Part shown: positions 4,163-60,114 of the stretch, one piece after another | Position numbering within the stretch: the stretch's first letter is position 1 | How the letters are laid out: each line of letters begins with the position of its first letter | Made by a program: the position numbers and the translations under genes | Sequence record: OP079919.1 | DNA: 64,000 bases | Direction: 5' to 3' (one strand) | The notes under the pieces: generated by a model | Database searches by the model: none | What the model was told of the DNA's origin: nothing | What the model saw: the letters and a program-made list of their open reading frames with translations, nothing else

Positions 4163-5870
4163 TACCAGCACCACATCGACCACATCAAGTACGAGTGTTG
4201 CGGCGACGGGTCCTCAGTTACCTAACTCGAATGATCTACTCACCCCACTCGATATTTCCAACCTTTACGATCCGGATACGGTAGCTGATTCTGATGCGTC
4301 AAAATACATCGTTGGTCGTGAAGGCCAAACGGTCATAGACGGATTGAACCAACGAGCTTACGTCATTACTCACGTTGGGACTGAAGATGCGAAATACAAA
4401 TCAACGTTAAAACGGATAGGGTTTGTTACGGATAGCGACGACAACTCGAGTGACATCATTGGTTTACCGGGACGCTTTGCCGGCAATGGTGTTTTGGGAA
4501 TCGACTACAGTGTCAGACCTCCTCGGGCTGTCATCGATGGTCGTGTATGGGCTCCTGATGCAGCCTACGGTTTGCTTTATAAAGGCGTGGTTATCGGTGA
4601 TAGCGGTCAGGTCATTTCTGTTCAATACGCAACTAATGGTGATTTGATTTCTAATCAGGTCCCGACTAAATTAGCTGCGGTTAACAACATGACCAACCAC
4701 AGCATCTTCACCACTACTGCATTTTCGGTGACTCAAACGGCTGACGAACTCCCGGACGGAAGTTTGTGTACGCTGGTGTTCTTCGATGCTGCCGGTAACA
4801 TGATTCCTGAACCTTATGAACTTGGCGTGATGCACACTGCGTTGCTGAGAGATCATCAGATCGGGATCAAGTATGTTTCGGCTATTGAACTGGTCTCTCC
4901 TTGGTTCACCGATACGACCGATCCTACTACGCTGAACATTCCTATCAACGTTGCGATGAGTTCGGTTCAATTCTCTGCGCGCATCCATTATAACGATGGG
5001 TCTACCAAAGAGCAATTGATTGACGGGACCAAATGTGCGATCATCGGGCTCAATGAATATAAACCTACTACGGTGGGTCAGCGAGCTTCGATCGTACTTC
5101 GTTATTCGTTCGATGAGGACGAACAGGCTTTAATTGCTACGCCTAATTATCCCGACATGATCACCCAGGCTTATCAGATCGTTTGTACTCAGGTTAACGG
5201 CGCCTACTCTCCAAAACTCTACACTTATCCGGTGTGGAACGGAACAGGGTATTCGCTCAAACATTACCTGTACGATCTTACCCGTGGGTATGCGACTGAC
5301 GTTACTCAGCATGTTACACTCAACGACACGTCGCCAGCCTTCCAGCCGGCTAACTATGGCGTTCAGCAAGACATGGTGTTTAACCTGACGCTGTCAGACG
5401 TATCTTCGACGTTTAAAGCATGGACGCTGGTACAACATACTTCTATTACGTTGTATAAAGCGAATACCGGCACGGGTCGTCGTTGGGCTATTCAGTACTC
5501 TTCTGCGAATAATCCTTACGTCGCTTATAACGTCGGGTATACCGAAGCCAATGGTGTTCAGTCCATTAACCTGGCTGGTTCCATCCTCACGATTTCTGAT
5601 TGGTTGAATCGACTCTACTATCCGGTAGAACCATTGATCGATACCACGAAAGAATCGGCGGCTCTGGTTCCTAACTATATCCGGTTGGTTGACACTAACG
5701 GGGTTACTCACGACCTTGAAATCAACGATTGGAATAAACCTCAAGCTCTCACTTCTCCTGTTGCAAGTGGCCAAACCCTCTTCCTGCAATGGATTCAGAA
5801 ATCAGAGAACGGGGCCGAACTCCAATTGGCGACCACGGGTGTTGTTGTAGACGTCGCTCCGAGCAATTAA
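4155..5870 (+). CDS. Virion structural protein (phiKZ gp26-like by synteny)
   Basis: 571 aa, T/V/N-rich beta protein, overlaps the previous stop, directly upstream of terminase. Confidence 0.6.
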   Translation: MFDTSTTSTTSSTSVAATGPQLPNSNDLLTPLDISNLYDPDTVADSDASKYIVGREGQTVIDGLNQRAYVITHVGTEDAKYKSTLKRIGFVTDSDDNSSDIIGLPGRFAGNGVLGIDYSVRPPRAVIDGRVWAPDAAYGLLYKGVVIGDSGQVISVQYATNGDLISNQVPTKLAAVNNMTNHSIFTTTAFSVTQTADELPDGSLCTLVFFDAAGNMIPEPYELGVMHTALLRDHQIGIKYVSAIELVSPWFTDTTDPTTLNIPINVAMSSVQFSARIHYNDGSTKEQLIDGTKCAIIGLNEYKPTTVGQRASIVLRYSFDEDEQALIATPNYPDMITQAYQIVCTQVNGAYSPKLYTYPVWNGTGYSLKHYLYDLTRGYATDVTQHVTLNDTSPAFQPANYGVQQDMVFNLTLSDVSSTFKAWTLVQHTSITLYKANTGTGRRWAIQYSSANNPYVAYNVGYTEANGVQSINLAGSILTISDWLNRLYYPVEPLIDTTKESAALVPNYIRLVDTNGVTHDLEINDWNKPQALTSPVASGQTLFLQWIQKSENGAELQLATTGVVVDVAPSN

Positions 5871-5883
5871 GATTCGTTATCCT

Positions 5884-5911
5884 AACTACCGGTCTGAAAA
5901 GACCGGTAGTT
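5884..5911 (+). terminator. Hairpin between gp26-like gene and terminase
   Basis: AACTACCGGTC-TGAAAA-GACCGGTAGTT, 11-bp stem followed by T-rich sequence. Confidence 0.6.
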
Positions 5912-5953
5912 ATATTTTATATCGAGACCGAGACAAACCGACAGGATAAAACC

Positions 5954-8900
5954 ATGTTTGCAAGTAAAGACGAATTAGAACTACATCTTGCAAGAGAAAA
6001 ACTTGCTATGATAGGAGCGACAGAAAGTCAGCTCCCCGAATACCTGCTCGATGACGACACAGAAGCGCTTCCCATCAGGACCCCAGAAGAATTGCTTCTA
6101 GCCCATTATCGAGAAGACACATTAAGTGCGATCAAAACGGTCAGGTTCTTAAAGGACTTCGAACGTTATAACGCTAAACCGGATCTGACGACGAAGAACA
6201 TCTCTTTCTTAAAGGTTGCTGAAATCTTTAGACTGATGGGGATAAAGAATTACTATTTCTGCCTCCAGCTCAACAATCCGTTGCTGATAGGGGTAGATCC
6301 TTACGACCCCAACCTGACAGATGAACAAAAATTCATGATCCTCCAGGAGTGCCGTGAAAACTTCTGGTATTTCCTCCGTGAAGTACTTCATCTGAGCGGT
6401 GGTATTCAGTTCCAGGCAAACAGAGCAAACATCTGTTTCTTATGGTGTTATTTGTGCCACGTCAACACCATGCTTATCATTCCCCGCCAATTCGGGAAAA
6501 ATTCTAGATTAGATTCTCTTGTAAAAATACCCAACGGTTGGAAGAAAATGGGGGATATGCGCAAGGGTGACGTAGTATCCACTCCTGATGGTAAAACGGC
6601 TAAAGTTACCGGGGTTTATCCTCAAGGTGTCACTCCTTTATATAAGGTTACTTTTAAAGATGGAAGAGAATCTTACGTCGGGTCTGATCATTATTGGACG
6701 GTATGGGATCCCGGTAAGGGTGATGGCGGGGTCTGGCGAACACTGACCACACTCGAGTGCCAACAACGCATGACCGAGATGAAGAAAGCGCATAACTATC
6801 TTTCTGTTCCTTTGGTTCAGCCTGATAATGATCCAGATAAGAAACTTGCCATTCATCCTTATGTTCTAGGTGTTTTACTAGGTGACGGATGCATCTCTAA
6901 TAAAAGCGTTGTTGTAGCTAAACCAGATAAAGAGATGTTCGATAAGGTTACAGGGCTCATCCCTGAGTCACTAGAAACCTCATGGGTTGATGATAAGAGC
7001 TTTATCATCAGACGTAAGCCGACTAACATAACCCAGAACAATCAACTTAAAGATGATTTAACCAATCTCGATTTATTCGGATTGCGGTCCTGGGAGAAAT
7101 TTGTTCCTACCGATTACTTAAATGGTTCTTATCGCCAGCGTTTAGAGTTGCTACAGGGTTTACTTGATACTGATGGACACGCAGGTACGGGTGGGAACAT
7201 TGAGTATTGCACGACGTCTCCTAAACTCGCTAAAGATTTCGTTTACCTTGCTCGTAGCATCGGGGCAATATGTTCTTGTAAAGAACGCCACACGTATTAC
7301 ACGCATAATGGCGAGAGACGCCAGGGGAGATTATCTTATCGCATTAGTGTTCGACACACACAGCCTTGGGAACTCTTCACGTTAAGTCGTAAACGAGATC
7401 GTTTAGTTGACAAAACACGAGGGTTAAAATTTAACAGCCGTTTAACCATGCGTTCCATTGAGTATGTGGGGGAAGAAGAGACTCAGTGCATTGAAGTGGA
7501 CCATCCTGATCATCTTTACATCATGGATGATTTCGTCGTCACTCACAACACTGTTTCTGCCCAGAGCATTATGTTCTGGCTAACTTACTTAACCGGGAAG
7601 TCTTACGAATCCCACTTAATCACCCTGAAAGACGATAACCGTAGTCAGTTCGTAGAGGCGTTAAAGGGTATCCGTAACAACATCCCGAGTTACTTAACCA
7701 ACGTGGGGTGGCGAGATAAGGATAGCGGTAACTCATTAACCTATAGCGCGTTTGGGGATGATAAGAAAAACATCTTCCGTATTAGTGTACCTCAAATCGG
7801 TAGAGAGGCGGCTCGTAACGTCGGTCGTGGTTTGACTATCAAAACGCGTATGATTGACGAACCGGCATATATCAACTTCATGGAAGAGATACTTAACGGT
7901 GCGGGCCCTAGTACACTAACGGCTCGTGCTAACGCCAGAAGAATAGGTGAACCCTATGGGACGGGATTCATTACCACGCCTGCGAGTAAAACGACGGCAA
8001 GCGGCGAATACATGTACAACATGTTGATGGATGCGACCGAGTGGCGGGAAACGTTCTTCGACAGTTTTAACGAAAGTCATCTCTACCAACGTTTGATTAA
8101 AGCAAGTCCTGTGGAGGGAATCACCAGTCCTACCGTAGGCATGGTTTTCAACTACTTGCAGCTGGGTAGGAATAAAGACTGGGTTAAGAAAACCATAGAC
8201 GAGTTAAAACTCAGTTTAGCCGAAGCGAAGATCGACTTACTGTTAATGTGGGACGACGCCAGTAAAGGTAAACTTTTCGACGACTTAACTCGAGAAGCGT
8301 TAAACGAGGGTAAACGAGGAATACTCTGGAGTCAGGAAGTAGGGAGTACGGGGTTGTTCATCGACTGGTTTATTACGCCAGAAGAACACACCCAAATCAT
8401 TACTGGGAATAGTCAAACCTTTTACGTAGTCGGTTGTGATACTTCCGCTGCGCAAAACCGAGACGCCTGTACTGTCGTGATAAGAGACGTCATGGACGGT
8501 AAAGTGATTGGGGTGGGTCGTTATCCGATAGCCTACTTAATGGACGTGGGCGAGGTACTACAAACGATCCTGTTAGAGATTAAGAACAGCTTACTGATCA
8601 TCGAGCGTAACTTCGCGCATCACATGATCGACCAACTGCTCGTTAGTCTTCCTGCATTAGGCATCGATCCCTTTAAACGTATCTTTAATCAGATCGTACA
8701 GGATCCGGTTAAATACGAAAAAGAAATGATCGAGTTTAAACAACGTAATTTCGCTAACAGAGACAGTCACTTCTATCTGAGATTCAAACATTTGTTTGGG
8801 TTCGTTACCAACGCCAAAACGCGTGACGAAGTATATAGTTTTATCCAAGAAGCGGTAGGGACTACCGGAGATAAAATTTACTATACTAAACTCATCGACG

Positions 8901-9352
8901 AACTGGTCAACCTCAAAGAGAAAGGGGGAAGGATAGACCACGAAGCCAATAAACACGATGACCTGGTTATCGCTTGGTTGTTAGGATTCTGGTTCTTGAA
9001 ACTGGGTAACAATAAAAGCGAATACGGAATTCCTCCAGGTATTAGTTTGAGTAAAATCAGCTTGATGCGTGTTGGGGACGATAAAAATGAGGAAACCAAC
9101 AGTGCGCACAATGAAGCGATGATCGCACTCTATCGTCGTAAAGTTGAAGAGCTGAGTGACAGACTCATTAAAACCACCGACAATACCGTAGCTCAAAGGA
9201 TCGAGTACATGATTGACAAACTCAGCAGCATGATCCCTCAAGATAAGCGTAAGAGTTTGACCATCGATGAAATCGTTAGAAAGGCCAAGGAGGAAAGAAG
9301 TCGTCGAGTATTGGAAGCGCGTAAGTTACGCAGTCGTTACGCGTACATGTAA
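5954..9352 (+). CDS. terL: Terminase large subunit, intein-containing
   Basis: Walker A PRQFGK|T split by an intein, Walker B-like RMIDEPAY, ITTP coupling motif, nuclease motifs VGCDTS and HDDLVIAW. The track start 5789 runs through a terminator, so ATG 5954 (AGGA SD) is preferred. Confidence 0.9.
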   Translation: MFASKDELELHLAREKLAMIGATESQLPEYLLDDDTEALPIRTPEELLLAHYREDTLSAIKTVRFLKDFERYNAKPDLTTKNISFLKVAEIFRLMGIKNYYFCLQLNNPLLIGVDPYDPNLTDEQKFMILQECRENFWYFLREVLHLSGGIQFQANRANICFLWCYLCHVNTMLIIPRQFGKNSRLDSLVKIPNGWKKMGDMRKGDVVSTPDGKTAKVTGVYPQGVTPLYKVTFKDGRESYVGSDHYWTVWDPGKGDGGVWRTLTTLECQQRMTEMKKAHNYLSVPLVQPDNDPDKKLAIHPYVLGVLLGDGCISNKSVVVAKPDKEMFDKVTGLIPESLETSWVDDKSFIIRRKPTNITQNNQLKDDLTNLDLFGLRSWEKFVPTDYLNGSYRQRLELLQGLLDTDGHAGTGGNIEYCTTSPKLAKDFVYLARSIGAICSCKERHTYYTHNGERRQGRLSYRISVRHTQPWELFTLSRKRDRLVDKTRGLKFNSRLTMRSIEYVGEEETQCIEVDHPDHLYIMDDFVVTHNTVSAQSIMFWLTYLTGKSYESHLITLKDDNRSQFVEALKGIRNNIPSYLTNVGWRDKDSGNSLTYSAFGDDKKNIFRISVPQIGREAARNVGRGLTIKTRMIDEPAYINFMEEILNGAGPSTLTARANARRIGEPYGTGFITTPASKTTASGEYMYNMLMDATEWRETFFDSFNESHLYQRLIKASPVEGITSPTVGMVFNYLQLGRNKDWVKKTIDELKLSLAEAKIDLLLMWDDASKGKLFDDLTREALNEGKRGILWSQEVGSTGLFIDWFITPEEHTQIITGNSQTFYVVGCDTSAAQNRDACTVVIRDVMDGKVIGVGRYPIAYLMDVGEVLQTILLEIKNSLLIIERNFAHHMIDQLLVSLPALGIDPFKRIFNQIVQDPVKYEKEMIEFKQRNFANRDSHFYLRFKHLFGFVTNAKTRDEVYSFIQEAVGTTGDKIYYTKLIDELVNLKEKGGRIDHEANKHDDLVIAWLLGFWFLKLGNNKSEYGIPPGISLSKISLMRVGDDKNEETNSAHNEAMIALYRRKVEELSDRLIKTTDNTVAQRIEYMIDKLSSMIPQDKRKSLTIDEIVRKAKEERSRRVLEARKLRSRYAYM
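6500..7549 (+). mobile_element. 350-aa intein with LAGLIDADG homing endonuclease (class 3 signature, Asn1)
   Basis: Begins NSRLDSLVKIPNGW after Walker A Lys and ends VVTHN|T. Block B SDHYW, LAGLIDADG motifs VLGVLLGDG and LLQGLLDTDG, block F TQCIEVD. Confidence 0.92.
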
Positions 9353-9674: not shown

Positions 9675-10280
9675 TTAGTTTTTAATGTAATCCACTAACG
9701 CTTCAAAATCACCGTCGTAGAAATACGGTTTAATTTTGATTAAAGAACAAGCCGCAGACAGAGCATTTTCGTAACGATGAACGAATCGCTCAAAATACTC
9801 TCGGTTGAGAAGACGGGTTTCTTGATCATCTAAAATCGATCTGGATCCCGCTCTTTGTAAAAACGTATCGTGATCGATTTTTACAAAGATAAGTTTATCG
9901 GGGTACATTTGGGTGCTGAATATTTTTAAAGCCTTTACGTTGCGTTCTATAACACTGTAAAGACCTATTCGACCATTACCCTGATAAACCGCAGTAGAAA
10001 TGAAACAGCGATCGGAAATAACCGTCTTACCTTGGTTTAAAGCAGGAACAACAACTTTATCCCCTAACTCTATTCGCTGAGCAATAGCGAGATAAAGTTT
10101 TGCTTCTTCACAAATCCCATTATCGATAATGAGATTACGGATGGTTAACAAAGAGTCTGGAGACTTAGCCGGTTCCTCCACTTGAAGAACGTCGTAATTA
10201 TCGGCCTTCAATCTCTCTGTTAACTGTTTAGTTAAGGTTGACTTGCCCGCCAAGTCCATGCCTTCTAGAACAATGTACAT
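9675..10280 (-). CDS. tmk: Thymidylate kinase
   Basis: N-terminal P-loop YIVLEGMDLAGKST, EEP motif and ISDR motif typical of dTMP kinases; 201 aa. Confidence 0.9.
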   Translation of the reverse strand: MYIVLEGMDLAGKSTLTKQLTERLKADNYDVLQVEEPAKSPDSLLTIRNLIIDNGICEEAKLYLAIAQRIELGDKVVVPALNQGKTVISDRCFISTAVYQGNGRIGLYSVIERNVKALKIFSTQMYPDKLIFVKIDHDTFLQRAGSRSILDDQETRLLNREYFERFVHRYENALSAACSLIKIKPYFYDGDFEALVDYIKN

Positions 10281-13556: not shown

Positions 13557-13591
13557 TATACTCTCCTCCCCTTATCGGGGAGGAGAGTATA
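13557..13591. terminator. Bidirectional terminator between convergent genes
   Basis: 15-bp perfect stem TATACTCTCCTCCCC / GGGGAGGAGAGTATA, T-run downstream. Confidence 0.8.
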
Positions 13592-13606
13592 ACTTATTTT
13601 TTTTTC

Positions 13607-15105: not shown

Positions 15106-15951
15106 CTAGATCCGACTTGGGACAGCGTTTCTGATGGCGTTGTATCTCCGATCCGGGTCAGAATACGTCATGAGTTTTATCCAGCGAGTTTTAAACAATT
15201 CCTCGTACTGGTTAAGACTATCACGGTACTCACTGATATCGTCACGGATAATATCAACCTGGACCCCAGAGCGGGCTACTCCTTCGTCGACTTTGTACCG
15301 AACTGTTTTCCAGATGTAGTTCTTGGTCATCAGGATAACTAAGTCGCCAAATACGTCGTAGGCTCTCGGATGTATCGTAGATAACCCATCGTCATAACTC
15401 AGGATAAGTTTACCTGTCAGGGAGAATACCCCACTCGGCGCGCCATGGATCACAAACGAGTTATTCCCGACGAGAGTTATATTCGTGAACGTCTGGGGGA
15501 TTTCTCGGTTGGGTAACATCCCGTTGATCATGGAGTTCAATGCATCGTTGACAGTACCTACCCCGCATGAGTCAGCATTGCCAAGTACGCTCATGATTCC
15601 ACTGGAGGAATTCATCGCCCCCTGGTAAACTTCCACAACCGAAATAATTTTCCGACCGCCCGTCAAGAAATCAGGGACGTTAACCAGCTGCATCCCTTGG
15701 CCGAGATGTTCAATCCGAGATCCGGTTAAATCAATCAGCTCTGTCACCCCACCCTGGACGTTGCACCGGGGTAGGATGATCGCATGTATAATTTTTTCTC
15801 GAATGCCTTGCTGAACGGTGGTCTGCGCGTACTGGTTATACCAGTTCCCGGTCAGATTCCCGTTAGGGTTCGAGAACGCAAGCTCCAACAGGTACTCGGG
15901 GATATCACTCCCGTTGAGAACTTTGTTGATCGCGTAGTCCACGCAGTTCAT
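15106..15951 (-). CDS. Conserved Chimalliviridae-type protein, probably virion-associated
   Basis: In-frame ATG 15951 (MNCVDYAINKVL) with GGGAG SD; co-oriented with 13607-15097. Confidence 0.55.
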   Translation of the reverse strand: MNCVDYAINKVLNGSDIPEYLLELAFSNPNGNLTGNWYNQYAQTTVQQGIREKIIHAIILPRCNVQGGVTELIDLTGSRIEHLGQGMQLVNVPDFLTGGRKIISVVEVYQGAMNSSSGIMSVLGNADSCGVGTVNDALNSMINGMLPNREIPQTFTNITLVGNNSFVIHGAPSGVFSLTGKLILSYDDGLSTIHPRAYDVFGDLVILMTKNYIWKTVRYKVDEGVARSGVQVDIIRDDISEYRDSLNQYEELFKTRWIKLMTYSDPDRRYNAIRNAVPSRI

Positions 15952-15991
15952 AATCAACTCCCACACTGAGTTTCGGGACTGGAGAAATTTC

Positions 15992-16987
15992 CGTCTCGAT
16001 AAAAATTCAACTGAGAATTTTTACTCTGGGGTTTTCGGCGGTTATAATATTTCACTGCGGGAATTTAAAAACTCAACGGGTTTACGATCCCGTATGTTTT
16101 TGAGTTTTATTTCCCGTATAAAATACTCCGTGCCGTAAGACAACACCCCACAGAAAAAACCTCGCCTTCGGAAAAATTCCTCGAAGGCGAGTTGCCATGA
16201 TCTCACTCGAGCAAGAATCAATCCGACATACAATCCCAAACGGTCCGAAATTTTTTCTTCGGAATTTTGGTCATTGGTAAATTTTTACATACAAATCTAT
16301 TTTATATTTGTATTTTTCGCGTGCGCGGATATTCCAAATTTTCAAAGATAATCTAAAACCGATTCCAATTCTGGGTTTTTATTTTTCTGTGTTTTGATTT
16401 TCCAAATCCAATTTTCAAAAATCTAAATCTAAAAAATCTAAAAAATTTAATACTCAAAAATCAATTTTTCCTAGGGGTCCTTATTACGCGTGCGTACGCC
16501 CGCACGCGTATAAAAAACAAATATAATACTACGTATTATATTTTCCTTTGGTTTTATATTTTTAATTTATTAAAAATATATTAATATAAATTATTATATT
16601 TTTTATTAGTTTGTTTTTATAAAAAATATATAAATATATATTTATATATATTTATATTCATTAGGCGCGCGCCAGCGTGCGTGTGTGTACGTGCGCGCAC
16701 GCGTAATAGAGAAGGGATGATAAAAATACAGGATTTAATCTGAGAAATTATCCAGAAAAAATCACACAGAGTAAAAAAATATTAACCGGAACGATTTTGA
16801 GAAGATTTAATACCCAACCTAGGAATTCGTATCAGTCGGATGAAAAAGGGTTTTAGAAATCGATACAGGAAGTTTTAGAGGGTATTCCGATCGAGTTCTC
16901 AGGAAAGAATTATTCAGATTAAAATATTTTAATCAGGGTAATTAATTTTTACAGTGAATTAAATTTATCGAGACGAGAAGATTTAAT
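15992..16987. other. Candidate replication origin or cis-acting DNA element
   Basis: About 1 kb non-coding, at a strand switch. Near-pure A/T core at about 16510-16663, 13-bp IR (16482-16494 / 16696-16708), 12-bp outer IR (15992-16003 / 16964-16975), 13-bp direct repeat, several palindromes. Confidence 0.5.
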
Positions 16988-17109
16988 CGCAAAGTAATAT
17001 CTTACGGAGAGTATAATCTTCTGAACAGGACCGAGATCTCGAATAGCCAGATGGAAATTATCCATCCGTTCGAAAGTTAACCTGAAATATCCCTAAGAGG
17101 CCAAATCCT

Positions 17110-17844
17110 ATGCAACCAGCTAACCCATGGAAAAACAACAAACACGTTAAATCACAAGATAACACCACCGCAGACCGGTACGAATCTCTTCTGCGTGAAT
17201 TACCTGATGCGCTCAATGCGACTCCCAGAGACCCAGGTTACTTGATCGCTACCAAAAAGATTTTATTAGTACTGGAAATTCTCGAAGGAACTCGATTGTC
17301 AGTTCGTGACGTGATGGAAAACGAGAACCTGATTCGTAAAGTTCACGAGTTACTGGTGGAGTTGGGTTGGAAGCAAGCGATTAGCCGAGGGACTCAGGTT
17401 TTTGTTACTCACCAGGATTTAATTAAACCGGGTGTTTACCGATTGATTGATCTCGATGAAACCGCGATGGGTTACACCAAAGAGATCATGGATCATATTT
17501 TATTAGACCGTCGGTTCAGTGTTCGGGTGGACGGTAACGATATCCGGATTCTTCCTGGAGACCGTAGTGCGAGTAATCCGTTTAGTCTGCTGTCTGCTAA
17601 CGTAGTAAGTAGCTGGCGTAAGGCGATACGGGAATACGATAAAACTGTTACCAGTAATCTTATTGGACATCTGACGGTTATCGGCGAAGATACGATGAGT
17701 TGCCCGCTCGATTTAAAACTCATCTTCGCCCTGCTGGATTACCTCGGCTGGCCGGAAATGTATTTAACCGGCGAACAGATCTTATTGAGTAACCCCATGG
17801 GTGATTATCAAACCCTCGAGGTGAATTTTATCGATCCTGAGTAA
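17110..17844 (+). CDS. Hypothetical protein
   Basis: 244 aa, GAGG SD; lies between the origin-like element and the structured-RNA region. Confidence 0.65.
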   Translation: MQPANPWKNNKHVKSQDNTTADRYESLLRELPDALNATPRDPGYLIATKKILLVLEILEGTRLSVRDVMENENLIRKVHELLVELGWKQAISRGTQVFVTHQDLIKPGVYRLIDLDETAMGYTKEIMDHILLDRRFSVRVDGNDIRILPGDRSASNPFSLLSANVVSSWRKAIREYDKTVTSNLIGHLTVIGEDTMSCPLDLKLIFALLDYLGWPEMYLTGEQILLSNPMGDYQTLEVNFIDPE

Positions 17845-18096
17845 TTCTCAACTACAGTCCGATGTTATTAGTAAAGATCTTTGGACTCCCTGTTGATTAA
17901 CTAGCGACCCAACCTCATCTCTTTGAACCTCCTTACCACGAGCGAGATAACCAAAGTAGCTAGGGATTTTCAGGGGGTTCAATCCCCATTTTCGTTAATC
18001 TTATTAGACCCACTGTCCTAAGCCCATGAAGCCTTGAAATCTCTCCTGTAGCAGACAAAGTTTTCGTTCGGTGGGATAGATTAACGTTTTTATTCA

Positions 18097-18169
18097 CGTC
18101 GTATTATCTGATGAGTCTTCGACGCTAAACAAGACGAAACCTAATGAATCTATTTTATTAGGTCATAAT
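18097..18169 (+). ncRNA. Type I hammerhead ribozyme
   Basis: Stem I ATTAT 18103-07 / ATAAT 18165-69; core CUGAUGA 18108-14; stem II GTCTT 18115-19 / AAGAC 18131-35; GAAA 18136-39; stem III ACCTAAT 18139-45 / ATTAGGT 18157-63; cleavage triplet GUC ending 18164; loop II CGACG 18120-24 complementary to upstream CGTCG 18097-18101. Confidence 0.9.
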
Positions 18170-18800
18170 TCAACCTAAGCGTTGAACGGGCAGTTAGGGG
18201 CAATGGTCCCCGAGGTCTTCAGCTTCTTCGCCTGCCCGCACTAAAAAGTTCTTTCATGATTAGGCGTGCCGCGCTCTACGAGCGGACAACAAGCAACCGA
18301 AAGTGGGAGAGAAAGAAGCGTGTCCGGTCGCTTGCCGGAAAGTTGGTTCAGGCGGGTTTCTTCCCAACCCAAACGACGCTGCCCAAGATAGGGCTGCAAG
18401 TCGTATTAGCGTATTATACCGGTATGCGGGGTTTCTGCGATAAACCGGGTTAGCTACGGGTAAGAAACCGGCCGGAGTAATCAGCCTTTCGTATTCGGGT
18501 AACGTGAGTTATCGTAGAGATATCTCTGAGGGTTAGGCCAACCCCCGACGTTCTTCGAGTACGAAGGGAAGCTTGCTCAGCTTCGTAGAAACTCCAAAAT
18601 CTCAGACGGTCACACCTCGCAATCTTACGGCAGTATGATTGCCTATTCGTCCTTTGTCGCTCACCAAGGGGCGAGTAGGAAACCTCTGCCACGGCGTTTC
18701 GATTGTTTGCCTTTGCCATAACCCTCCTGTATAGGTTGAGTGTTAACTTCCCCAAGAGTATAACCTGTTATCTCTCTCTTCGTGAGGAGTCGGAGATAAT
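18165..18800 (+). ncRNA. Putative large structured ncRNA downstream of the hammerhead cut
   Basis: No credible ORF, GC-richer than flanks, continuous nested helices and GNRA-capped hairpins (see findings). Confidence 0.6.
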
Positions 18801-18824
18801 GGGATAAATTCTTAGGAGTTCGTT

Positions 18825-19013
18825 ATGTACACATACCAGTATACCGTGCGATACCGAATACCTAATTCTGTGTTTACGACTTACAGCGGAGAAATTACTT
18901 CTGACTGTTTGCTCAATAACGCTAATCGCATTTTTGATGTCTTGCGTACTGAAGTTCTTAAAGCTGTTAACGTTAACTCGTTTAGCATTACGAACTTTAA
19001 GCTGAAAGAATAA
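18825..19013 (+). CDS. Small hypothetical protein, 62 aa
   Basis: TTAGGAG SD 6 nt before ATG; sits between two structured non-coding blocks. Confidence 0.6.
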   Translation: MYTYQYTVRYRIPNSVFTTYSGEITSDCLLNNANRIFDVLRTEVLKAVNVNSFSITNFKLKE

Positions 19014-19183
19014 GTCGAGCTACGCGCTCAACCTACCTTAGGGCCGGAAGTAGTTACGACTTAGGGGGAAAGAAGAGTCGTGCCTTTGAGTACCCCAACC
19101 CCATTCGTGTGGTGATCTTCCACATCATCCCATGGATAATGCTGCATCATCATCATTAAAGTTCTACCATGAATTTTATTCCT

Positions 19184-19215
19184 TCCAGTAGGGTTCGTCC
19201 CTACTGGACTTTTTT
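19184..19215 (+). terminator. Rho-independent terminator upstream of phuZ
   Basis: TCCAGTAGGG-TTCGT-CCCTACTGGA followed by CTTTTTT. Confidence 0.8.
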
Positions 19216-19274
19216 CGCGTTTTATTTATCGGCACATATAAGGTTATAGAGGAACTAGATTTTTTGAGTTCTAA

Positions 19275-19288
19275 ATTATGGTAATGTA
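19275..19288 (+). promoter_or_regulatory. Candidate early promoter for phuZ (ATTAT-GGTAA-TGTA)
   Basis: Same ATTAT-N5-TGTA spacing as 9369 and 31742. Confidence 0.5.
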
Positions 19289-19346
19289 AAGCAAAAGATA
19301 ATGCTTTCCATTCCAACTATCATAATTTCTTTTAGGAGTTTCATCT

Positions 19347-20309
19347 ATGAGCACATTACGTGTTTACGCGTGCGGCGGTACCGGTATTAATATTGCGTCT
19401 AAATGGATTGCCACCGGTGCGAATACGCTTATTCGTAAAGCCCAGTTCATTGGACTGGATAGCAGTGAAAACAACAAACCGTATAACGACGCCTTTAAGG
19501 TCGAACGTCCTGAAGGAACTCGTGGCGGTGGCAAAGAACGTAAGCTGATCGGTAAAATCGCTGCTGGGTTTATTGACAGTATTTTGACCAAACATAAACC
19601 GGGCGATTTCAACCTGATCATCATGAACGCGGCTGGCGCTACCGGGAGTACGTTCGGCCCGACTCTGATCAACCGTCTCCTCACCCAGGGCGTTCCGGTC
19701 ATTGCGTTGGTCGTAGGTGACCTGACTTCTGAACTGGAAAACTACAACACGGTTAAAACGTTTGAAAGCCTGGACAACCAGCGCATCAATCTGAACGTGC
19801 CGGTTATCATCGACTACGTGGACAACGCCAAATATCCCAGCCGTGGATTGGCCGACAAATATGCCATCGGCCGTCTTGATATCCTGAGCCTGTTCTTAAC
19901 CGACGAACACGAAGAAAGCGATTTCCAAGACATCCGGAACCTGTTCTATTACAACCAGGTTACCAAGGCGGCGCCTACTCTTGCTCGTATCGACTTCTTG
20001 ACCGATACTCAGTTAGACAACGTTACTCCGGGGCTGGTTGCTGAATTTGGTTTGTATCGTAAAGCGGACGATATCGGTAGCCATATTAAAAATCTGGCAT
20101 ACCGTTCGACCGGCGTTATTCAGGAAGGTAGCACTAACTTCCCGGCTGGAATAGAACATCTCCACATGGTCTTTGACCACGATGCGACGATTAAAGATAT
20201 CTTGGTTCTGGTCCAGGATCTTAAAGATATTGAGATCCAAAATAACGAACGTTTTAAATCCGCTCAGCAGGTTGGAAACGGCGGCGATGATTCTGGAATG
20301 TCCTACTAA
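19347..20309 (+). CDS. phuZ: Phage tubulin PhuZ
   Basis: N-terminal VYACGGTGINI nucleotide-binding loop, AAGATGS tubulin signature, 320 aa, short acidic C-tail. Confidence 0.92.
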   Translation: MSTLRVYACGGTGINIASKWIATGANTLIRKAQFIGLDSSENNKPYNDAFKVERPEGTRGGGKERKLIGKIAAGFIDSILTKHKPGDFNLIIMNAAGATGSTFGPTLINRLLTQGVPVIALVVGDLTSELENYNTVKTFESLDNQRINLNVPVIIDYVDNAKYPSRGLADKYAIGRLDILSLFLTDEHEESDFQDIRNLFYYNQVTKAAPTLARIDFLTDTQLDNVTPGLVAEFGLYRKADDIGSHIKNLAYRSTGVIQEGSTNFPAGIEHLHMVFDHDATIKDILVLVQDLKDIEIQNNERFKSAQQVGNGGDDSGMSY

Positions 20310-22998: not shown

Positions 22999-23030
22999 GT
23001 TACTCTCATCCCTAATGGGATGAGAGTAAC
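22999..23030 (+). terminator. Terminator hairpin
   Basis: 14-bp perfect stem GTTACTCTCATCCC / GGGATGAGAGTAAC, T-rich tail. Confidence 0.8.
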
Positions 23031-23114
23031 CTCTTTTATTATTATTTTTTTATTGCCGTTCCTTTTTATTAGACGAAAACAATTTTAAATTTTAAAGTGA
23101 AACGGAGCTTAAAG

Positions 23115-25199
23115 ATGACTGAGACTTTTTTAAGTCCGTTTGTTGATGACGATTACAGTGCCGATAGGAATATCGTTAAACACTATCATGAACAAATGGC
23201 TTTGTATCTTGGTAAAAAGCGCAATGAAGATCCTAAAGCTATTTACGAAGTACTTTCTAAACACATCCAGCCCAATCAAAACGGCTATAAAGATCGTCGT
23301 ATGCAGGTTTTAGTAAAAAACAAGTACGGCGATAGAGAAGTTAAAGTCATGACGGCATCTAATTTCTTTAATGAAGTTAGACGTCAGAACTGTCATCTCA
23401 GTCCCAGTATGGTTGCTTACAAGAACACTGAAGAAGAGCAATCCGTTAATGCAATCGGGACAGAAAAATTTCTTAGCCTTCGGTCCCACTATAAAGGGTT
23501 AAAACAAAAGGCCAGTGACGAAGGTGATGAATGGGGTAAGAAGGCTTTCCACGAAATTCAAAACGCCTTGAAAATATTCAACAACGCCCAATCAGGCGCA
23601 ATGTCATCCCGTGGGACTCCTCTTGTTAATAAGTCAGGTCATACTGCTCTGACTAGTGCTTGCCGTGCTTTGACCAGTACCGCTAACATGTGTAATGAAA
23701 AGTTATTGGTCGGTAACCGATTCTTTAACTCGTACGAGCGAACGATGGAGAACTTACTGTCGTTGCTCTCAGTTACTGACATTAAGCGAATGGACGAAGT
23801 CATCAAGAAACTGAAGATGAACTACGCGACCATAGACCAGGTTATGGAAATGGTCAAACGTTGTTCTCGTCGGTATTGGAGAGACGTTAAACAACTCGGC
23901 TACATTAAAGAGTTTTTGGAGCAACTTCGTCCGGTTGAATTAACGGCTTTGCTTTGCAATATGGATATCGAGGGATTGAGGGTTACGAATAAAGAAATCC
24001 TTTATAAATTCTTTGATGACTTCTCTCATATACCGGAAGTTCCAGAAGGCGCTAAGGCTGAAGATTATACTCCGCCTGATAACGGAGACCGATACACGCT
24101 TTGTGTGTCTAAACTCTTAGCGAAACCAAGCAAAGTTCAGTTAAACTTTTTAAACCAGTATCATCTGGAAATGGAACATAAGTGGAAAGACTTTATTGAA
24201 GTCTTCTTTAAATGCTCCATTCCTCCATCGGGCATTTATGAAATCAGGGATATGATCCGAGAGGTAGTTCAAACCTCAGATACCGATTCCTCGATTTACA
24301 CCGTAGATAAAGTCGTAGAGGATTACACCGACGAAAAAGGACAATCGTTGAGATTGAATGGGGTTCTTACTTACTTCATTCGAATGATAGCGGTTCATCA
24401 GCACGCTCAGTTAAGTGAAAACATGAACGTTGCTAAACGCTACCGTAATCGTCTGACGATGAAGAACGAGTACTTGTTTGGAGGATATGTTACAACATTA
24501 ATGTCAAAACACTATTTTGCCACACAGCTGATGGTAGAAGGGGTATTGAATAAAAATGTTGAAATGGAAATTAAGGGTGTTCACTTAAGGAGTTCTAAAG
24601 TAGCTCATGAGATAAAGGATTTTGCACACAAACTCATGAGGGAGATATTGGATTGTATCTATGACAAACGTCAGATGGATGCAGCCGATATTCTCTTTAG
24701 AGCAGCAGAGTTAGAAAGGGCCATCATTAAGGATATCAACGAAGGCCAATGGGGTTGGCTAACACGCAACACGATAAAGAGTGACGACGTGTACACATTG
24801 CCGGATCAATCAGTGTATCAATACCACTTACTCTGGGAGGAAGTGTTCTCCCCTAAATACGGACACGCTCCACCACCACCCTATTCTGCTATGAAAGTTA
24901 ACCTTGATTTAGGTAATAAAGGTAAGGTCGAAGAGTTTTGTAAGAATCTGGAAGATAGAGAACTTGCAAATCGTTTATTAGATTTCTTCGTTAAGAAAGA
25001 GAAAAAAGAAATCAGTACGTTCTTTGTTCCTGCTGACGTATTACCAAGATTAGGCAAGTTACCCGATGAAGTTATTAAAGCCGCGGATATCCGACAGATC
25101 ATTAAACAGAACTTAAAATCCGTTTATGCTGTGTTGGAAGCCTGTGGGCTGTATATTGTTAACGATAAAATAACGCGTTTAATTAGTGACGAACACTAA
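23115..25199 (+). CDS. Family B DNA polymerase, polymerase-domain subunit (phiKZ gp50-like)
   Basis: Motif B QNALKIFNNAQSG, motif C SDTDS, KNEY, KHY and KGV motifs; GGAG SD before ATG 23115. Confidence 0.85.
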   Translation: MTETFLSPFVDDDYSADRNIVKHYHEQMALYLGKKRNEDPKAIYEVLSKHIQPNQNGYKDRRMQVLVKNKYGDREVKVMTASNFFNEVRRQNCHLSPSMVAYKNTEEEQSVNAIGTEKFLSLRSHYKGLKQKASDEGDEWGKKAFHEIQNALKIFNNAQSGAMSSRGTPLVNKSGHTALTSACRALTSTANMCNEKLLVGNRFFNSYERTMENLLSLLSVTDIKRMDEVIKKLKMNYATIDQVMEMVKRCSRRYWRDVKQLGYIKEFLEQLRPVELTALLCNMDIEGLRVTNKEILYKFFDDFSHIPEVPEGAKAEDYTPPDNGDRYTLCVSKLLAKPSKVQLNFLNQYHLEMEHKWKDFIEVFFKCSIPPSGIYEIRDMIREVVQTSDTDSSIYTVDKVVEDYTDEKGQSLRLNGVLTYFIRMIAVHQHAQLSENMNVAKRYRNRLTMKNEYLFGGYVTTLMSKHYFATQLMVEGVLNKNVEMEIKGVHLRSSKVAHEIKDFAHKLMREILDCIYDKRQMDAADILFRAAELERAIIKDINEGQWGWLTRNTIKSDDVYTLPDQSVYQYHLLWEEVFSPKYGHAPPPPYSAMKVNLDLGNKGKVEEFCKNLEDRELANRLLDFFVKKEKKEISTFFVPADVLPRLGKLPDEVIKAADIRQIIKQNLKSVYAVLEACGLYIVNDKITRLISDEH

Positions 25200-26615: not shown

Positions 26616-28628
26616 ATGTCCGACAATCAAAATGGCAACAACTGGGAACAAACCGTCCTGAACACCGCTGCTGGTAAAGGAGAGCCGATCGTCTCTGCTT
26701 CTGCCGAGAATTTCGGTTCTCAGCTGCTCGGTCTGCTCGGCCAGGCTTCTCTTCTGGGTTCTTCCAAGAACGTGCCGGAAGTAGAAGAAACCGCGGCTCT
26801 GATCAAGAAACGCGTAACCGATCTGAAAAACGGTACGCCGGGCGAAACCCAGAAGAAGATCCTGCCGGAAGTGAACATCATCACCAAACCGATCATCTCT
26901 GCACTGCCGGGCATCGTCCTCTCCCTGCACATGAACAACAACCCTGCGGTATACGTCATGCCGGTGCTGTTCTCTAACCGTCATCTGACCAATACCCTGG
27001 AAGAGATCCAGATCGACAACGGCGTTAACCAACAGCGCAAAATGTCCATGCCGTTTACCCCGGATTCCTACGCTCGTGCTGATCTGTTCGAACAGATCAA
27101 AATGCACTACAAAGCGATGCTCCAGGATAAAGGTGTGAGCGAATGCGTGATCATCAACGTGATGGTTATCGACCTGGAACAGATCGTTGGTGACGATGTC
27201 CTGAATCAGGGCAAATCGCCGCTGCTGCGTGATGAAATCATGCGTAGCTGGGAACAGGGTCTGATGGTACAGATCGCGAAAATCGCAGCCAACCAGCCGA
27301 AAGCTTCTCTGCCTTCTCCGTTCTCTGCGACCGGTGGCAAAGCCTATGGTCAGCACGGTAATGCGATTGCTCGCGTTGAACCGATCCGCGGTCAGTATGT
27401 TAACGAAGGTCTGCTGTCTCCGGCGAACCTGACCATCCGCATGCAAACTGCTAACCACAACGGTTATCAGGGTAATGCTGAGCAGTCCCGCGAAATCGTC
27501 AACACCTACGCGACCGTTAGCCTGATGGGTTCTCCGATCCAACAGTTCAACCCGCAGCTGACCGGTAACATTCCGCAGCCGTACCTGCAGACCCCTAACG
27601 GTCGTCCTCAGGGCTACACCCCGCTGCAGCCGGTGGTTATTATGAACCACGCTAAAGCTGGCGAAGTGCTGGGCGATGCGACTGGCCTGTCGACCTACTT
27701 CATGGGTCTGTTCTCTCTGATGGCGACCAACAGCAACTACCTGTTTGCTGAAGCTCTGCGTTCTAAGAACGTAGGTTCTCGTGGCTCCCTGACTGATATG
27801 GAACACCGCATCCGTCAGATGGAAAATGGATTACCTCCGCGCACTAAGGGTACTGAGATGACCGACGCTAAACTGTCGGATATCGATTTCACCACTAACT
27901 GGATTCGCGCCAATATTGGACCTAAAGCAGTCTTTGCTGCTGACCTGATCCAGTTCGGCCCGGATGCGGCGATCTCCAACTTCCTGTTCAACCTCACCTC
28001 CGGTGCGAAAGACTACAGCAAATGCGTGAAAACCGTTATTGCTATCGTCGATTCCATCTCCGGTGATGCGAAAGCCATGTCTGCGGTTATCGCAGAAAAC
28101 CAGGCCAACAACAATGGTAACGGCGGATGGATTCCAGGTAAACCGGTACTGCACGTTTCTAACGCGCTGATCCCGGTCGGTACTGCTGTACTGGATAACA
28201 AACGCATTGCGCTCGGCGAAGTGGACGAGATGTTCCTGTCCAAGCACTACAAAGATCAGATCACCCCGATGAACCAGTACCTGGAAAACATGTACGGGTC
28301 TAACCCGAACGTGCCGGAAAAACTGCGTCGCTATAACCTGCTCATCCAGCTGTCCACCATCTTCTCTGAAGGTGTAAACCTGTTCGGCTTCGCTCGTCGT
28401 TGCTACTGGGATCCGCTGTTCATGGATGCGTTCACTAAAGCGATGAACACCATCGGTTCTCTGCAGGTTACTGGCTCTATGGGTCAGTTCGCTGCTAACG
28501 TTCAAGTCTTCGCTCCTGGCCAGCAGTATATCTCTCAGGCAACTGCTGGTAACTCCGGTGGCGTCGTTCTGGGTAACGGTATGATGCTGGGTGCAGGTGG
28601 CGGTCTGGTGTTTGGCCCGTCCTACTAA
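26616..28628 (+). CDS. chmA: Chimallin, major phage nuclear shell protein
   Basis: 670 aa, strong highly-expressed codon bias, own terminator, directly upstream of the nvRNAP beta' gene as in phiKZ gp54-gp55; flexible G-rich C-tail. Confidence 0.85.
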   Translation: MSDNQNGNNWEQTVLNTAAGKGEPIVSASAENFGSQLLGLLGQASLLGSSKNVPEVEETAALIKKRVTDLKNGTPGETQKKILPEVNIITKPIISALPGIVLSLHMNNNPAVYVMPVLFSNRHLTNTLEEIQIDNGVNQQRKMSMPFTPDSYARADLFEQIKMHYKAMLQDKGVSECVIINVMVIDLEQIVGDDVLNQGKSPLLRDEIMRSWEQGLMVQIAKIAANQPKASLPSPFSATGGKAYGQHGNAIARVEPIRGQYVNEGLLSPANLTIRMQTANHNGYQGNAEQSREIVNTYATVSLMGSPIQQFNPQLTGNIPQPYLQTPNGRPQGYTPLQPVVIMNHAKAGEVLGDATGLSTYFMGLFSLMATNSNYLFAEALRSKNVGSRGSLTDMEHRIRQMENGLPPRTKGTEMTDAKLSDIDFTTNWIRANIGPKAVFAADLIQFGPDAAISNFLFNLTSGAKDYSKCVKTVIAIVDSISGDAKAMSAVIAENQANNNGNGGWIPGKPVLHVSNALIPVGTAVLDNKRIALGEVDEMFLSKHYKDQITPMNQYLENMYGSNPNVPEKLRRYNLLIQLSTIFSEGVNLFGFARRCYWDPLFMDAFTKAMNTIGSLQVTGSMGQFAANVQVFAPGQQYISQATAGNSGGVVLGNGMMLGAGGGLVFGPSY

Positions 28629-28682: not shown

Positions 28683-28714
28683 TGCATTTCATTTTTTGAG
28701 TGAACGGAGACGTT

Positions 28715-30319
28715 ATGGATCAGTACGGTGATCGTATTATTGATGCATTAACAGCGCCTGAATTTTCATCATTGCAACCAGAGGCTCAGTTTAAAACTTA
28801 TGCCGAACAATACGGTGGTGACCTTTCTGACGACAAACGTTTTTATGAACCCCTTTATCCCGACTTCACTGACTATAACCGTTTGCATGATACTGCTAAG
28901 GTCGATCCGGTTTACCTGAACGATTTCGATTTTTGTTTGGAAGAAGACCGAGAACGAATCGCATCTTTGATTCGTATGGACTTCAACACCGACACATTCG
29001 AAACCGTCGCGAGATGTAGTTGTGGGCATTTGAAGGGCAACTATTTATTGGGTCAGAAAAGATCATGTCCCATCTGTCAATCCCTTGTAGAGAAAGTCGT
29101 AGAGACTTCCTTAGATACTAAGGTATGGGTCAGGGTTCCAGAAGGTGTAGTTGGATTTATCAGCCCGGCTTATTACAAAACCTTCTTATCGAAGATCGCG
29201 ACCAATTCTCCAAAGATTGAGATCGTGACTTGGCTCATCGATCCGTCTTATCGTCGGGGAAGCCGAGCTCAGCATACTGAGTCCGGTCGTCGGATGTTGG
29301 CTGAACTCGATAAACTCGGAATAGTGCCCGGGCTTAACAGCTTTATATTGAACGCGGACAGATTCATGGAACACTTCCTTGTTGGTGAAGGAAGAGGTGC
29401 CGTGAGCATGAAGCCGGCTGATGGTAAAAAGCATTTGGATAAGTATTACGAATATCGTCATCTTATCTTCCCGCGCTATTTGTCCGTACCCAATAAACTC
29501 GCCACCATCATCGAGCAAGATGGTAAAGATAAGTACGTTTCTTCAACCCAATTGAAAACCTCGGCAATCTACCAATCTATTGCGGATACGAGGGATTCTA
29601 CTGAGTTTTATAAATGTACGATTAAGGACCTTAAAGAGAACGCTGATATCGTCGGGAAGGCAATAGTTCGATTAGGTAAGCAGAACTCTGATAACTATAA
29701 GAGTCAGCTGTTTGCTAAATCGAGCCTGATACGTAAACACGTAATCGCGGGATCGTTATCTTTATCAGGTCGTGGTGTTATCACGTCAACTACCGGATTG
29801 CATGACGCCGGTGTTGCTAAGATACCTTGGATCATGGCAGTGGCTATGCTGAAGAAACACATCCTGGGATATCTTTACCGTTTAGGGTACAGTCCCCTGA
29901 AAGCTGAAAGTGTAATCAGTACAGCAGCGCACCAAGTCGTCCCGGTTATCGATCAATTCTTTACCAAGCACGAAAAGCAAAAAGACATTGTCTGCATTTT
30001 AGGAAGAAACCCATCAATTCAGTACCTGTCAGCAAAAGCCTTCTTTATGTCGATCAACCGAGATTTAGAAGACGAGTCGATAAACTTACCGATACTCTCG
30101 GTTAAAACCTTTAATGCTGACTTCGATGGCGATACGATGTATTGCTACGTCCTCAGCGATTTGAAAGGCAAAGCCAAAGCGTATGGGTCGTTCGGTCATC
30201 AGTCCATGCTCGATGAAAACGAACCATTTACAATAAGTCGATTTGCTGATCAAACTTCAACGAATTTGATGAACCTCAACAACATGATGAGAGGAACACC
30301 AATCAATGAATGCGGCTGA
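28715..30319 (+). CDS. Non-virion RNA polymerase beta' subunit, N-terminal/catalytic part (phiKZ gp55-like)
   Basis: Zn-binding CSCG...CPIC, GRNP and catalytic NADFDGD motifs in one uninterrupted ORF. Confidence 0.92.
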   Translation: MDQYGDRIIDALTAPEFSSLQPEAQFKTYAEQYGGDLSDDKRFYEPLYPDFTDYNRLHDTAKVDPVYLNDFDFCLEEDRERIASLIRMDFNTDTFETVARCSCGHLKGNYLLGQKRSCPICQSLVEKVVETSLDTKVWVRVPEGVVGFISPAYYKTFLSKIATNSPKIEIVTWLIDPSYRRGSRAQHTESGRRMLAELDKLGIVPGLNSFILNADRFMEHFLVGEGRGAVSMKPADGKKHLDKYYEYRHLIFPRYLSVPNKLATIIEQDGKDKYVSSTQLKTSAIYQSIADTRDSTEFYKCTIKDLKENADIVGKAIVRLGKQNSDNYKSQLFAKSSLIRKHVIAGSLSLSGRGVITSTTGLHDAGVAKIPWIMAVAMLKKHILGYLYRLGYSPLKAESVISTAAHQVVPVIDQFFTKHEKQKDIVCILGRNPSIQYLSAKAFFMSINRDLEDESINLPILSVKTFNADFDGDTMYCYVLSDLKGKAKAYGSFGHQSMLDENEPFTISRFADQTSTNLMNLNNMMRGTPINECG

Positions 30320-48693: not shown

Positions 48694-48726
48694 TAATCCT
48701 CCTACCCCAATGGGGTAGGAGGATTA
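48694..48726. terminator. Bidirectional terminator
   Basis: TAATCCTCCTACCCC / GGGGTAGGAGGATTA between convergent genes. Confidence 0.8.
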
Positions 48727-48745
48727 GCTTATTTATTTTTTTTTT

Positions 48746-60083: not shown

Positions 60084-60114
60084 ATACTCCTCCTACCCTA
60101 GGGTAGGAGGAGTA
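60084..60114. terminator. Bidirectional terminator
   Basis: 14-bp stem ATACTCCTCCTACC / GGTAGGAGGAGTAT. Confidence 0.8.

Follow-up and report, generated by a model that had tools for sequence, protein, structure and literature searches.

Where does replication begin in a nucleus-forming jumbo phage? We approached this question through one intergenic element of Klebsiella phage KPN8, located between the gene for a homologue of phiKZ gp42 (DUF7484) and the gene KPN8_252. The window that we analyzed consists of the final 64,000 bases of the KPN8 genome (OP079919.1, 256,576 bp; window position = record position − 192,576), and coordinates refer to this window unless another record is named. An earlier sequence-only reading of the window had singled out a near-pure A/T core bracketed by a GC-rich 13-bp inverted repeat, and had proposed that this element is a replication origin, or else a genome anchoring or packaging site. 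What stands of this proposal is a conserved, single-copy and apparently cis-acting element with an origin-like layout; the proposed functions themselves are not separated by our data. As the best candidate, we rank first the reading that the element is the cis-acting replication-initiation region of the Miamivirus lineage. We infer the replication role in its entirety, and we regard it as plausible, if somewhat short of probable.

Composition and Architecture of the Element

The A/T core (16510–16663) is indeed as poor in G and C as had been described. It contains 6.7% GC over 150 bp, compared to 23% for the next-lowest 150-bp window of the genome, and its best 100-bp window contains 2% GC, compared to 19% for the runner-up. 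By nearest-neighbour calculation, the duplex stability of the core lies 7.2–7.3 standard deviations (SD) below the genome mean, and the next site outside the locus lies 4.1–4.2 SD below. On both measures, GC content and duplex stability, no other site in the genome is as low as the core. Exceptionally low duplex stability is the property that a DNA-unwinding element should have.

This core is bordered by two GC-rich blocks. The 13-bp inverted repeat, TATTACGCGTGCG at 16482–16494 and its exact reverse complement at 16696–16708, was found at the coordinates first given for it, with one arm in each block. Both blocks contain an inverted pair of half-sites (Table 1), and all four half-sites point inward with the consensus TTC-(0–2 nt)-ATTA-(0–2 nt)-CGCG(T/C)G. 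A pattern that combines a half-site pair with an A/T run has one match in the window and none in 100 shuffles. The element is single-copy, its motifs are unique to the locus, and the two genome copies of the sequence CGCACGCGT both reside in the element.

The blocks and the core also contain several palindromes. The hairpin that had been noted in the left arm is present with 10-bp stems (16485–16494 / 16501–16510) and a calculated folding energy of −12.7 kcal/mol as single-stranded DNA (z = −4.4). For the right block, the calculated folding is not better than that of shuffled sequence. The alternating purine/pyrimidine run in this block (16675–16705; 31 nt, 68% GC) is longer than any other in the genome, and the indels seen among relatives in its TG/CG tract are all even in length, as expected from dinucleotide slippage. 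Both palindromes described in the core could be reproduced. The first (ATATAATAC/GTATTATAT, 16521–16541; −5.8 kcal/mol, z = −7.4) bears divergent TATAATAC motifs, and the second, a perfect 24-bp palindrome at 16626–16649, is part of a longer imperfect one. The loop of the small palindrome (16530–16532) reads TAC in KPN8 and GTA in four relatives between arms that are perfect, meaning that the loop has been inverted. Judged by its sequence, this inverted loop is the footprint of hairpin-mediated template switching or inversion.

The surrounding control region adds further repeats. The A/T-rich zone to the left of the left block contains two copies of AATTTTCAAA(G/A)AT (16337 and 16410), AAATCTAAA repeats (16417–16442) and TTTAATAC at 16446. 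A direct repeat, TTTAATACYCAA...CCTAGG, occurs on either side of the element (16445 and 16805). Three mini open reading frames (ORFs) are annotated in the region, namely KPN8_249 (16042–16239), KPN8_250 (16617–16769) and KPN8_251 (16949–17065), and one of them crosses the A/T core. All three are interrupted by frameshifts or stops in close relatives and are probably annotation artefacts. Because these frames are broken in relatives, the region as a whole appears to be truly non-coding. An Rfam scan of 15900–19400 returned two sub-threshold matches only, neither of them in the element core, and no credible RNA family.

Table 1. Features of the control region and neighbouring genes in the 64,000-base window of KPN8
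Feature	Position	Strand	Description
Non-coding control region	15967–17109		Largest non-ORF segment of the genome (ORF mask)
Upstream GC box	16315–16327		CGCGTGCGCGG; third GC island, ~155 nt left of left block
A/T-rich repeat zone	16328–16481		154 nt; short repeats and A-tracts
Left GC block	16478–16517		Palindrome of two inward-facing half-sites; holds left 13-bp arm and hairpin
Half-site L-outer	16478–16494		TCCTTATTACGCGTGCG (read inward)
Half-site L-inner	~16501–16517	other strand	TTTTTTATACGCGTGCG (read inward)
A/T core	16510–16663		154 nt; putative unwinding element
Small palindrome	16519–16543		11-bp stem, 3-nt loop
Imperfect long palindrome	16571–16654		In core; 36-nt arms, 86% complementary
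Right GC block	16655–16716		Inverted half-site pair; contains GGCGCGCGCC (16664–16673), alternating tract and right 13-bp arm
Half-site R-inner	16655–16671		TTCATTAGGCGCGCG (read inward)
Half-site R-outer	16696–16716	other strand	TTCTCTATTACGCGTGCG (read inward)
Right flank / KPN8_252 leader	16709–17109	+	~400 nt, conserved; (A/G)GATTTAAT three times (16732, 16804, 16980)
Terminase large subunit (KPN8_236)	5789–9352	+	PHROG phrog_2, E = 1e-42
DUF7484, homologue of phiKZ gp42	15106–15966	−	Left neighbour of element
KPN8_252	17110–17844	+	Genus-specific, no family match; right neighbour of element
PhuZ tubulin	19347–20309	+	2.6 kb right of element, with a gene between
DNA polymerase	23097–25199	+	
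Chimallin	26616–28628	+	Nuclear shell protein
RNA polymerase beta-like subunit	28700–30319	+	

Conservation of the Element

KPN8 groups with phage Miami (genus Miamivirus), Raoultella phage VB_ZK_P1, BUCTxx100, YC1 and phiKp_32, which are 89–93% identical in this region. We compared the element with its flanking genes by mean pairwise identity among five Miamivirus genomes. The A/T core (97.9%) and the left GC block (97.1%) are the same in nearly every position, the right flank is 92.3% identical, the KPN8_252 gene as a whole 88%, and the third codon positions of the flanking genes 76–89%. The element evolves 5–10 times more slowly than these third positions. Comparison of these sequences supports the conclusion that the element is under purifying selection and represents cis-acting, single-copy, functional DNA.

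To reach more distant lineages, we collected metagenomic contigs by way of homologues of the neighbouring DUF7484 protein. Three lineages were obtained, in which this protein is 80% (L024), 66% (L019, L020 and L021) and 63% (L022 and L023) identical to that of KPN8. The whole element is covered by two of the contigs, L019 and L022, in both of which, as in KPN8, a GC block is followed by an A/T core (here ~100 nt; 4% and 13% GC, respectively) and a second GC block. In all three sequences, the four half-sites are found at the same positions and point inward, so that putative recognition-type boxes stand on both sides of the candidate unwinding element in three lineages. The left GC block is the best conserved part across lineages, with hairpin potential in all three (z = −4.4, −2.2 and −2.0), and the alternating purine/pyrimidine tract extends to 47 nt in L019. 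The core retains its composition across lineages, but not its sequence. Other parts recur in changed form: L022/L023 contain an equivalent ATACTACGTAGTAT palindrome, AATTTTC-type repeats are also found in L022/L023 and L019, and L019, L022/L023 and L024 all have a GC-rich island at the place equivalent to the upstream GC box, although its sequence differs in each.

The comparison with L022 is informative with regard to the 13-bp repeat. The reverse complement of the right end of the KPN8 element matches the left end of the L022 element over 21 nt, while the outer arms of L022 are not complementary to one another. With this observation we can rule out that long-range pairing of the outer arms, with the 13-bp repeat as a stem, is a conserved feature. 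Since the sequence of the predicted boxes is conserved but the pairing of the arms is not, recognition by a protein is indicated. Conserved position and orientation of boxes that do not pair is the pattern expected of protein-binding sites, and points to such a function here.

The same comparison bears on two other explanations. The first is that the element has no function or is selfish DNA that persisted by chance, for instance a miniature inverted-repeat element in decay or a mutational AT sink. Inverted terminal repeats around an AT-rich body would fit such an origin, as would the number of 13-mer repeats that a genome of this size should contain by chance (see below). Yet, the element is present in one copy in the genome and lacks a target-site duplication, as the flanking bases form no direct repeat. 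It occupies the same locus in lineages that differ by ~35% in protein sequence, and it evolves slowly compared to third codon positions. Protein and DNA-pattern scans of IMG/VR and a DNA-pattern scan of 185,579 GTDB species genomes gave no match, and a pattern scan of JGI metagenomes returned one further Miamivirus contig (L030, 252,837 bp) and one chance match. We disfavour this explanation and consider it the least probable of all.

The second is that the element serves as the site of a palindrome-processing enzyme, which could be a telomere-resolution-like site, a site where Holliday junctions or cruciforms are resolved, or a target of site-specific recombination. The palindromic GC blocks, the left one of which can form a stable hairpin in all lineages, are consistent with this idea, and so is the inverted 3-nt loop in the small palindrome of KPN8. 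Furthermore, the half-site CATTATACGCG(CG) of L019 and L022 is identical over 11–13 nt to the telRL/telO half-site of phage N15, with KPN8 one indel off. This likeness is confirmed, but it was spotted post hoc among many known motifs, and a tblastn search of the KPN8 genome with the N15 protelomerase TelN found no such enzyme (best E = 1.8). Telomere resolution was rejected on this ground. The circular closure of the genome map is also unlike hairpin telomeres, and a processing site leaves the 150-bp A/T core unexplained. In our view, an enzyme target of this kind is very unlikely.

A Proposed Model for Replication Initiation

How might this element initiate replication? We propose a layout in which a DNA-unwinding element of ~150 bp would lie between two GC-rich palindromic sites, each made of an inverted pair of TTC-ATTA-(TA)CGCG half-sites. 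Negative supercoiling, or transcription from flanking phage promoters, would open the A/T core, and the GC blocks would hold the resulting bubble to a defined size. These blocks may function as symmetric binding sites for a putative phage protein or, alternatively, as structural switches that stabilise the open state as cruciform or Z-DNA. Helicase and polymerase would then be loaded in both directions. The A/T-rich repeat zone to the left and the upstream GC box could have an auxiliary role in binding or bending. A plan with inverted initiator sites around an AT-rich centre, placed between divergent genes, is that of oriS and oriL of herpes simplex virus (HSV), of archaeal oriC and of the core origin of simian virus 40; the origins of phages T4 and T7 consist of a phage promoter and an unwinding element. 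The location of the KPN8 element also speaks for replication initiation, with the genes for DNA polymerase, PhuZ and chimallin within 3–10 kb to its right.

A number of observations weigh against this assignment. The 13-bp repeat alone is not significant, because about one exact 13-mer inverted repeat with arms 40–260 nt apart is expected per genome by chance (~0.2 per 64-kb window); the weight of this repeat comes from its position and its conservation. Cumulative GC/AT skew, which had been suggested as a check on the origin proposal, carries no origin signal and tracks the coding strand only. A direction-corrected skew regression over all candidate origins identified no significant origin position, and third-position AT skew, which switches near 78 kb and 206 kb, is marginal and of ambiguous sign. 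No candidate for an initiator gene was found in a search that covered the neighbouring gene KPN8_252. The KPN8_252 protein has no Pfam, PHROG or PDB match and no counterpart in L019, and its AlphaFold model has a predicted local distance difference test (pLDDT) score of 41. A role of this protein as initiator is not supported, as the gene is genus-specific and not conserved alongside the element. No consensus of phage promoters could be derived to support a transcription-primed mechanism. The sequence-only reading had suggested a look for the same architecture in related phages. It does occur in the close relatives, in L019 and in L022, but not in phiKZ and other genera: this architecture is absent from the syntenic place in L026 and L027 (neighbour identity ~55–56%), RisingSun, Sureiya and phiKZ. 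Given this absence at neighbour identities of 56% or less and in phiKZ, the element, if it is an origin, represents a type that is not family-wide. Finally, other cis functions could also go together with palindromes and an extreme AT content.

If the assignment is true, the element would be the first origin defined for chimalliviruses. Our literature searches found no published origin for nucleus-forming phages, in agreement with the earlier remark that none has been mapped in phiKZ-like phages. In the single paper to apply Ori-Finder to giant phages, its reliability was reported as low. An origin at this locus would follow a known design in a new form, and experiments could then directly address how replication initiates inside the phage nucleus. 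A defined start site would also provide a handle to search for the initiator protein and would aid the construction of replicons or engineered genomes of therapeutically relevant phages.

The Syntenic Interval in Other Genera

We compared two further whole genomes, those of Pseudomonas phage EL (211,215 bp, 49.3% GC) and Vibrio phage phiKT1028 (238,838 bp). The GC minimum of EL lies at 17,339–17,347 in windows of 60, 100, 150 and 300 bp, inside the gap that is syntenic with the KPN8 element. This gap of 650 nt (L031:17009–17658) separates the gp42 homologue ORF014 from ORF015 and PhuZ (ORF016), in the same gene order as in KPN8. The EL minimum contains 10% GC over 60 bp, deviates by 5.4 SD in stability, and is flanked on both sides by GC-rich palindromes (TATAAGCCCCGGAGGGGCTTATA and CCGGCATTCCCGAACAGGGAAGCCGG). 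In phiKT1028, the corresponding interval directly before phuZ contains the minima over 150 and 300 bp (194,565–194,850), which are only marginally below other regions. The sole intergenic iteron cluster of this genome is located immediately upstream of phuZ as well, and consists of four to five direct repeats of GTCAAGTT (four copies at 194,530–194,583 of OP123707.1, corresponding to L014:4650–4740, minus strand). By a rough estimate, the interval between the gp42 homologue and PhuZ accounts for ~3–4% of the non-coding DNA of each genome. The coincidences in EL and phiKT1028 are therefore unlikely to have arisen by chance (~3–4% per genome, equally rough).

These comparisons lead to a more far-reaching idea, which we put forward as tentative and more doubtful than the assignment of the KPN8 element by itself. 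The interval between the gp42 homologue and PhuZ may be a conserved replication-control region in a broad group of nucleus-forming phages that includes at least the genera Miamivirus, Elvirus and Tidunavirus. In Miamivirus, this region would take the form of a supercoil-sensing origin, with a bubble of ~150 bp between GC blocks that could adopt Z-DNA or cruciform structures, resemble telomere-resolution sites and would be read by a phage protein.

Assembly Breaks and Possible Genome Handling

Several deposited sequences are interrupted at the element. In the record of phiKp_32 (LC768500.1; L006:1–72 and L007:2985–3001), the first 72 nt are Illumina adapter, and ~150 nt of the A/T core are missing: the record stops 15 nt into the core and, after the adapter, resumes at the right block, with the fusion exactly at the junction between core and right block (window position 16664). 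This "complete genome" is linearised at an assembly gap inside the element. The contigs L020, L023 and L024 end at differing points within the element or at its edge. We rejected the idea that such breaks are physical ends, because the breakpoints vary between records, and low-complexity sequence or AT dropout therefore fits better. The practical consequence is that short-read assemblies break off at the element.

A preferred physical end could nonetheless produce an adapter fusion as precise as that of phiKp_32, and this observation brings up the possibility that the element is a different kind of cis-acting site for handling of the genome. It could initiate packaging as a pac site, tether or orient the genome within the phage nucleus or the capsid, or work in the manner of a centromere linked to PhuZ. 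A single-copy, conserved element with the architecture of a protein-binding site would suit such roles. So would its surroundings, with the terminase gene 7–10 kb to the left, phuZ 2.6 kb to the right, and the iteron array of the Vibrio relative directly upstream of phuZ. On the other hand, the differing assembly breakpoints are those of low-complexity sequence or AT dropout. The contig ends of Miami were closed by polymerase chain reaction (PMC7844079), and related giant phages have no defined termini (PMC12390700), both of which point to headful packaging with no fixed end. The element is also not adjacent to the terminase gene, from which ~12 genes separate it, and a TubR-like gene was not detected beside phuZ. 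The accepted role of PhuZ concerns the nuclear shell and capsids, not DNA. We consider a genome-handling site unlikely, though far from negligible.

Possible Transcriptional Control

The element had been placed at a switch from minus-strand to plus-strand genes. This switch is real, but only local: it is caused by a minus-strand island of three genes (KPN8_247–249) in a genome that is almost entirely plus-strand. A divergent intergenic region needs at least two promoters, and the element could be a hub whose divergent promoters drive one operon to the left, with the gp42 homologue and virion genes, and one to the right, from KPN8_252 towards PhuZ, DNA polymerase and chimallin. In such a hub, the A/T core would be an easily melted or upstream-activating sequence, and the GC palindromes would be operators, insulators or terminators.

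Early promoters of jumbo phages are known as AT-rich motifs of ~10 nt (PMC7598289), and four of the five non-coding TATAATAC-type motifs of the KPN8 genome are in the locus, two of them divergent inside the small palindrome. Promoter-like motifs of the TATAATAC and TTTAATAC types flank the core and enter it. Successive genes of L019 have a copy of the flank repeat TTATATAACC ~25 nt before their starts, and terminator-like hairpins are found at 16076–16263 of the KPN8 window. Against a control hub stands the size of the region: promoters do not need 1.1 kb, because the other divergent gene pairs of KPN8 are separated by mere tens of bases, and no other promoter region comes near such a composition. 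The best genome-wide promoter candidate, TCTATATTAC, is not in the element, and the number of sigma-70-like sites (7) is not above that in shuffled sequence (5.2). Promoters also leave the four conserved inward-facing half-sites unexplained, as well as the size and the compositional extreme of the element. Transcriptional control as the main function is about as improbable as genome handling. The two functions of transcription and replication are not exclusive, since a transcription-primed origin would have promoters too.

A promoter search by exact k-mers, non-coding enrichment and an expectation-maximisation motif model recovered only ribosome-binding and T-rich terminator motifs, together with the weak TCTATATTAC. 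One other motif, (C)TATATTAC, is almost confined to non-coding DNA, where four of five copies precede genes (positions 80506, 114578, 136965 and 142964 of the KPN8 record, outside the window). By its placement, this sequence is a candidate for an early-promoter motif of KPN8.

Gene Neighbourhood

The identification of KPN8 as a phiKZ-like phage, made initially from the window sequence, is borne out by its genes for chimallin, PhuZ and multisubunit RNA polymerases, which characterise KPN8 as a nucleus-forming jumbo phage. Some neighbouring genes of the element deserve comment. The terminase gene KPN8_236 carries the label "hypothetical" in the record and is annotated as ATP-dependent DNA helicase in relatives. 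The ~600 profile positions of its match to phrog_2 are spread across ~1,020 residues, as if the terminase contained a large insertion, possibly an intein; the L019 homologue shows a weak LAGLIDADG match. KPN8_238 (9675–10280) is annotated as thymidine kinase, but matches best to the thymidylate kinase family (phrog_761), like the syntenic genes of relatives.

Two large non-coding stretches between KPN8_252 and phuZ, 17845–18449 and 18756–19346, are 96.5% and 94.8% identical among relatives. Their conservation exceeds that of third codon positions, and the ORFs that overlap them are arginine-rich and odd. Both stretches are possible unannotated RNAs or regulatory DNA. A match to the type III hammerhead ribozyme at 18093–18145 is far below threshold (24 bits versus 48.5). 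At more than 20 gene junctions across the genome, we also observed a hairpin with the conserved stem ACTCCTAC...GTAGGAGT, followed by TTATTTTTT; examples in the window are located at 13557–13600, 22999–23050, 48694–48745 and 60084–60110. From their sequence, these hairpins look like conserved intrinsic terminators that are probably bidirectional.

Comparison with Known Systems

Four known systems resemble the element in part. The partition centromere tubC of TubZRC systems, whose iterons precede tubR-tubZ, shares with KPN8 and its Vibrio relative a set of non-coding repeats upstream of a gene of the tubulin family, which in the Vibrio relative are the GTCAAGTT iterons. The KPN8 element differs from tubC in its distance of 2.6 kb from phuZ with an intervening gene, in having inverted rather than tandem repeats, and in that no TubR-like protein was detected. 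With telRL (telO) of phages N15 and phiKO2, the element has in common a palindromic site, the half-site CATTATACGCG(CG) as found in L019 and L022, and an alternating CG centre. Unlike these phages, KPN8 has two palindromes that are split by a 150-bp A/T core, a circularly permuted genome and no protelomerase that we could find.

The origins oriF and oriG of phage T4 and the primary origin of phage T7 combine a phage promoter with a downstream unwinding element and are primed by an R-loop. What brings KPN8 close to these origins is that it relies on RNA polymerases of its own and that a putative A/T-rich unwinding region lies by promoter-like AT motifs. The T4 and T7 origins lack clamps of GC palindromes, whereas KPN8 lacks a confidently assigned promoter. 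If the comparison holds, KPN8 would require an origin for no more than the initial rounds of replication, as recombination genes are present.

The remaining comparison is with HSV oriS/oriL and with archaeal oriC, where inverted origin recognition boxes (ORB) stand on either side of a DNA-unwinding element. The KPN8 element has no sequence similarity to these origins, and neither a UL9 nor an Orc1/Cdc6 homologue is found. Its core of ~150 bp compares to 18–50 bp in HSV and archaeal origins, and each of its flanks is, unlike theirs, a palindromic half-site pair rich in alternating purines and pyrimidines. What the systems share is an AT-rich centre between inverted boxes, putative recognition sites in the case of KPN8, that contain GC, can form hairpins and are situated between divergent genes near replication genes. 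The likeness extends to practical matters: HSV oriL is hard to clone or assemble, just as the KPN8 element breaks assemblies.

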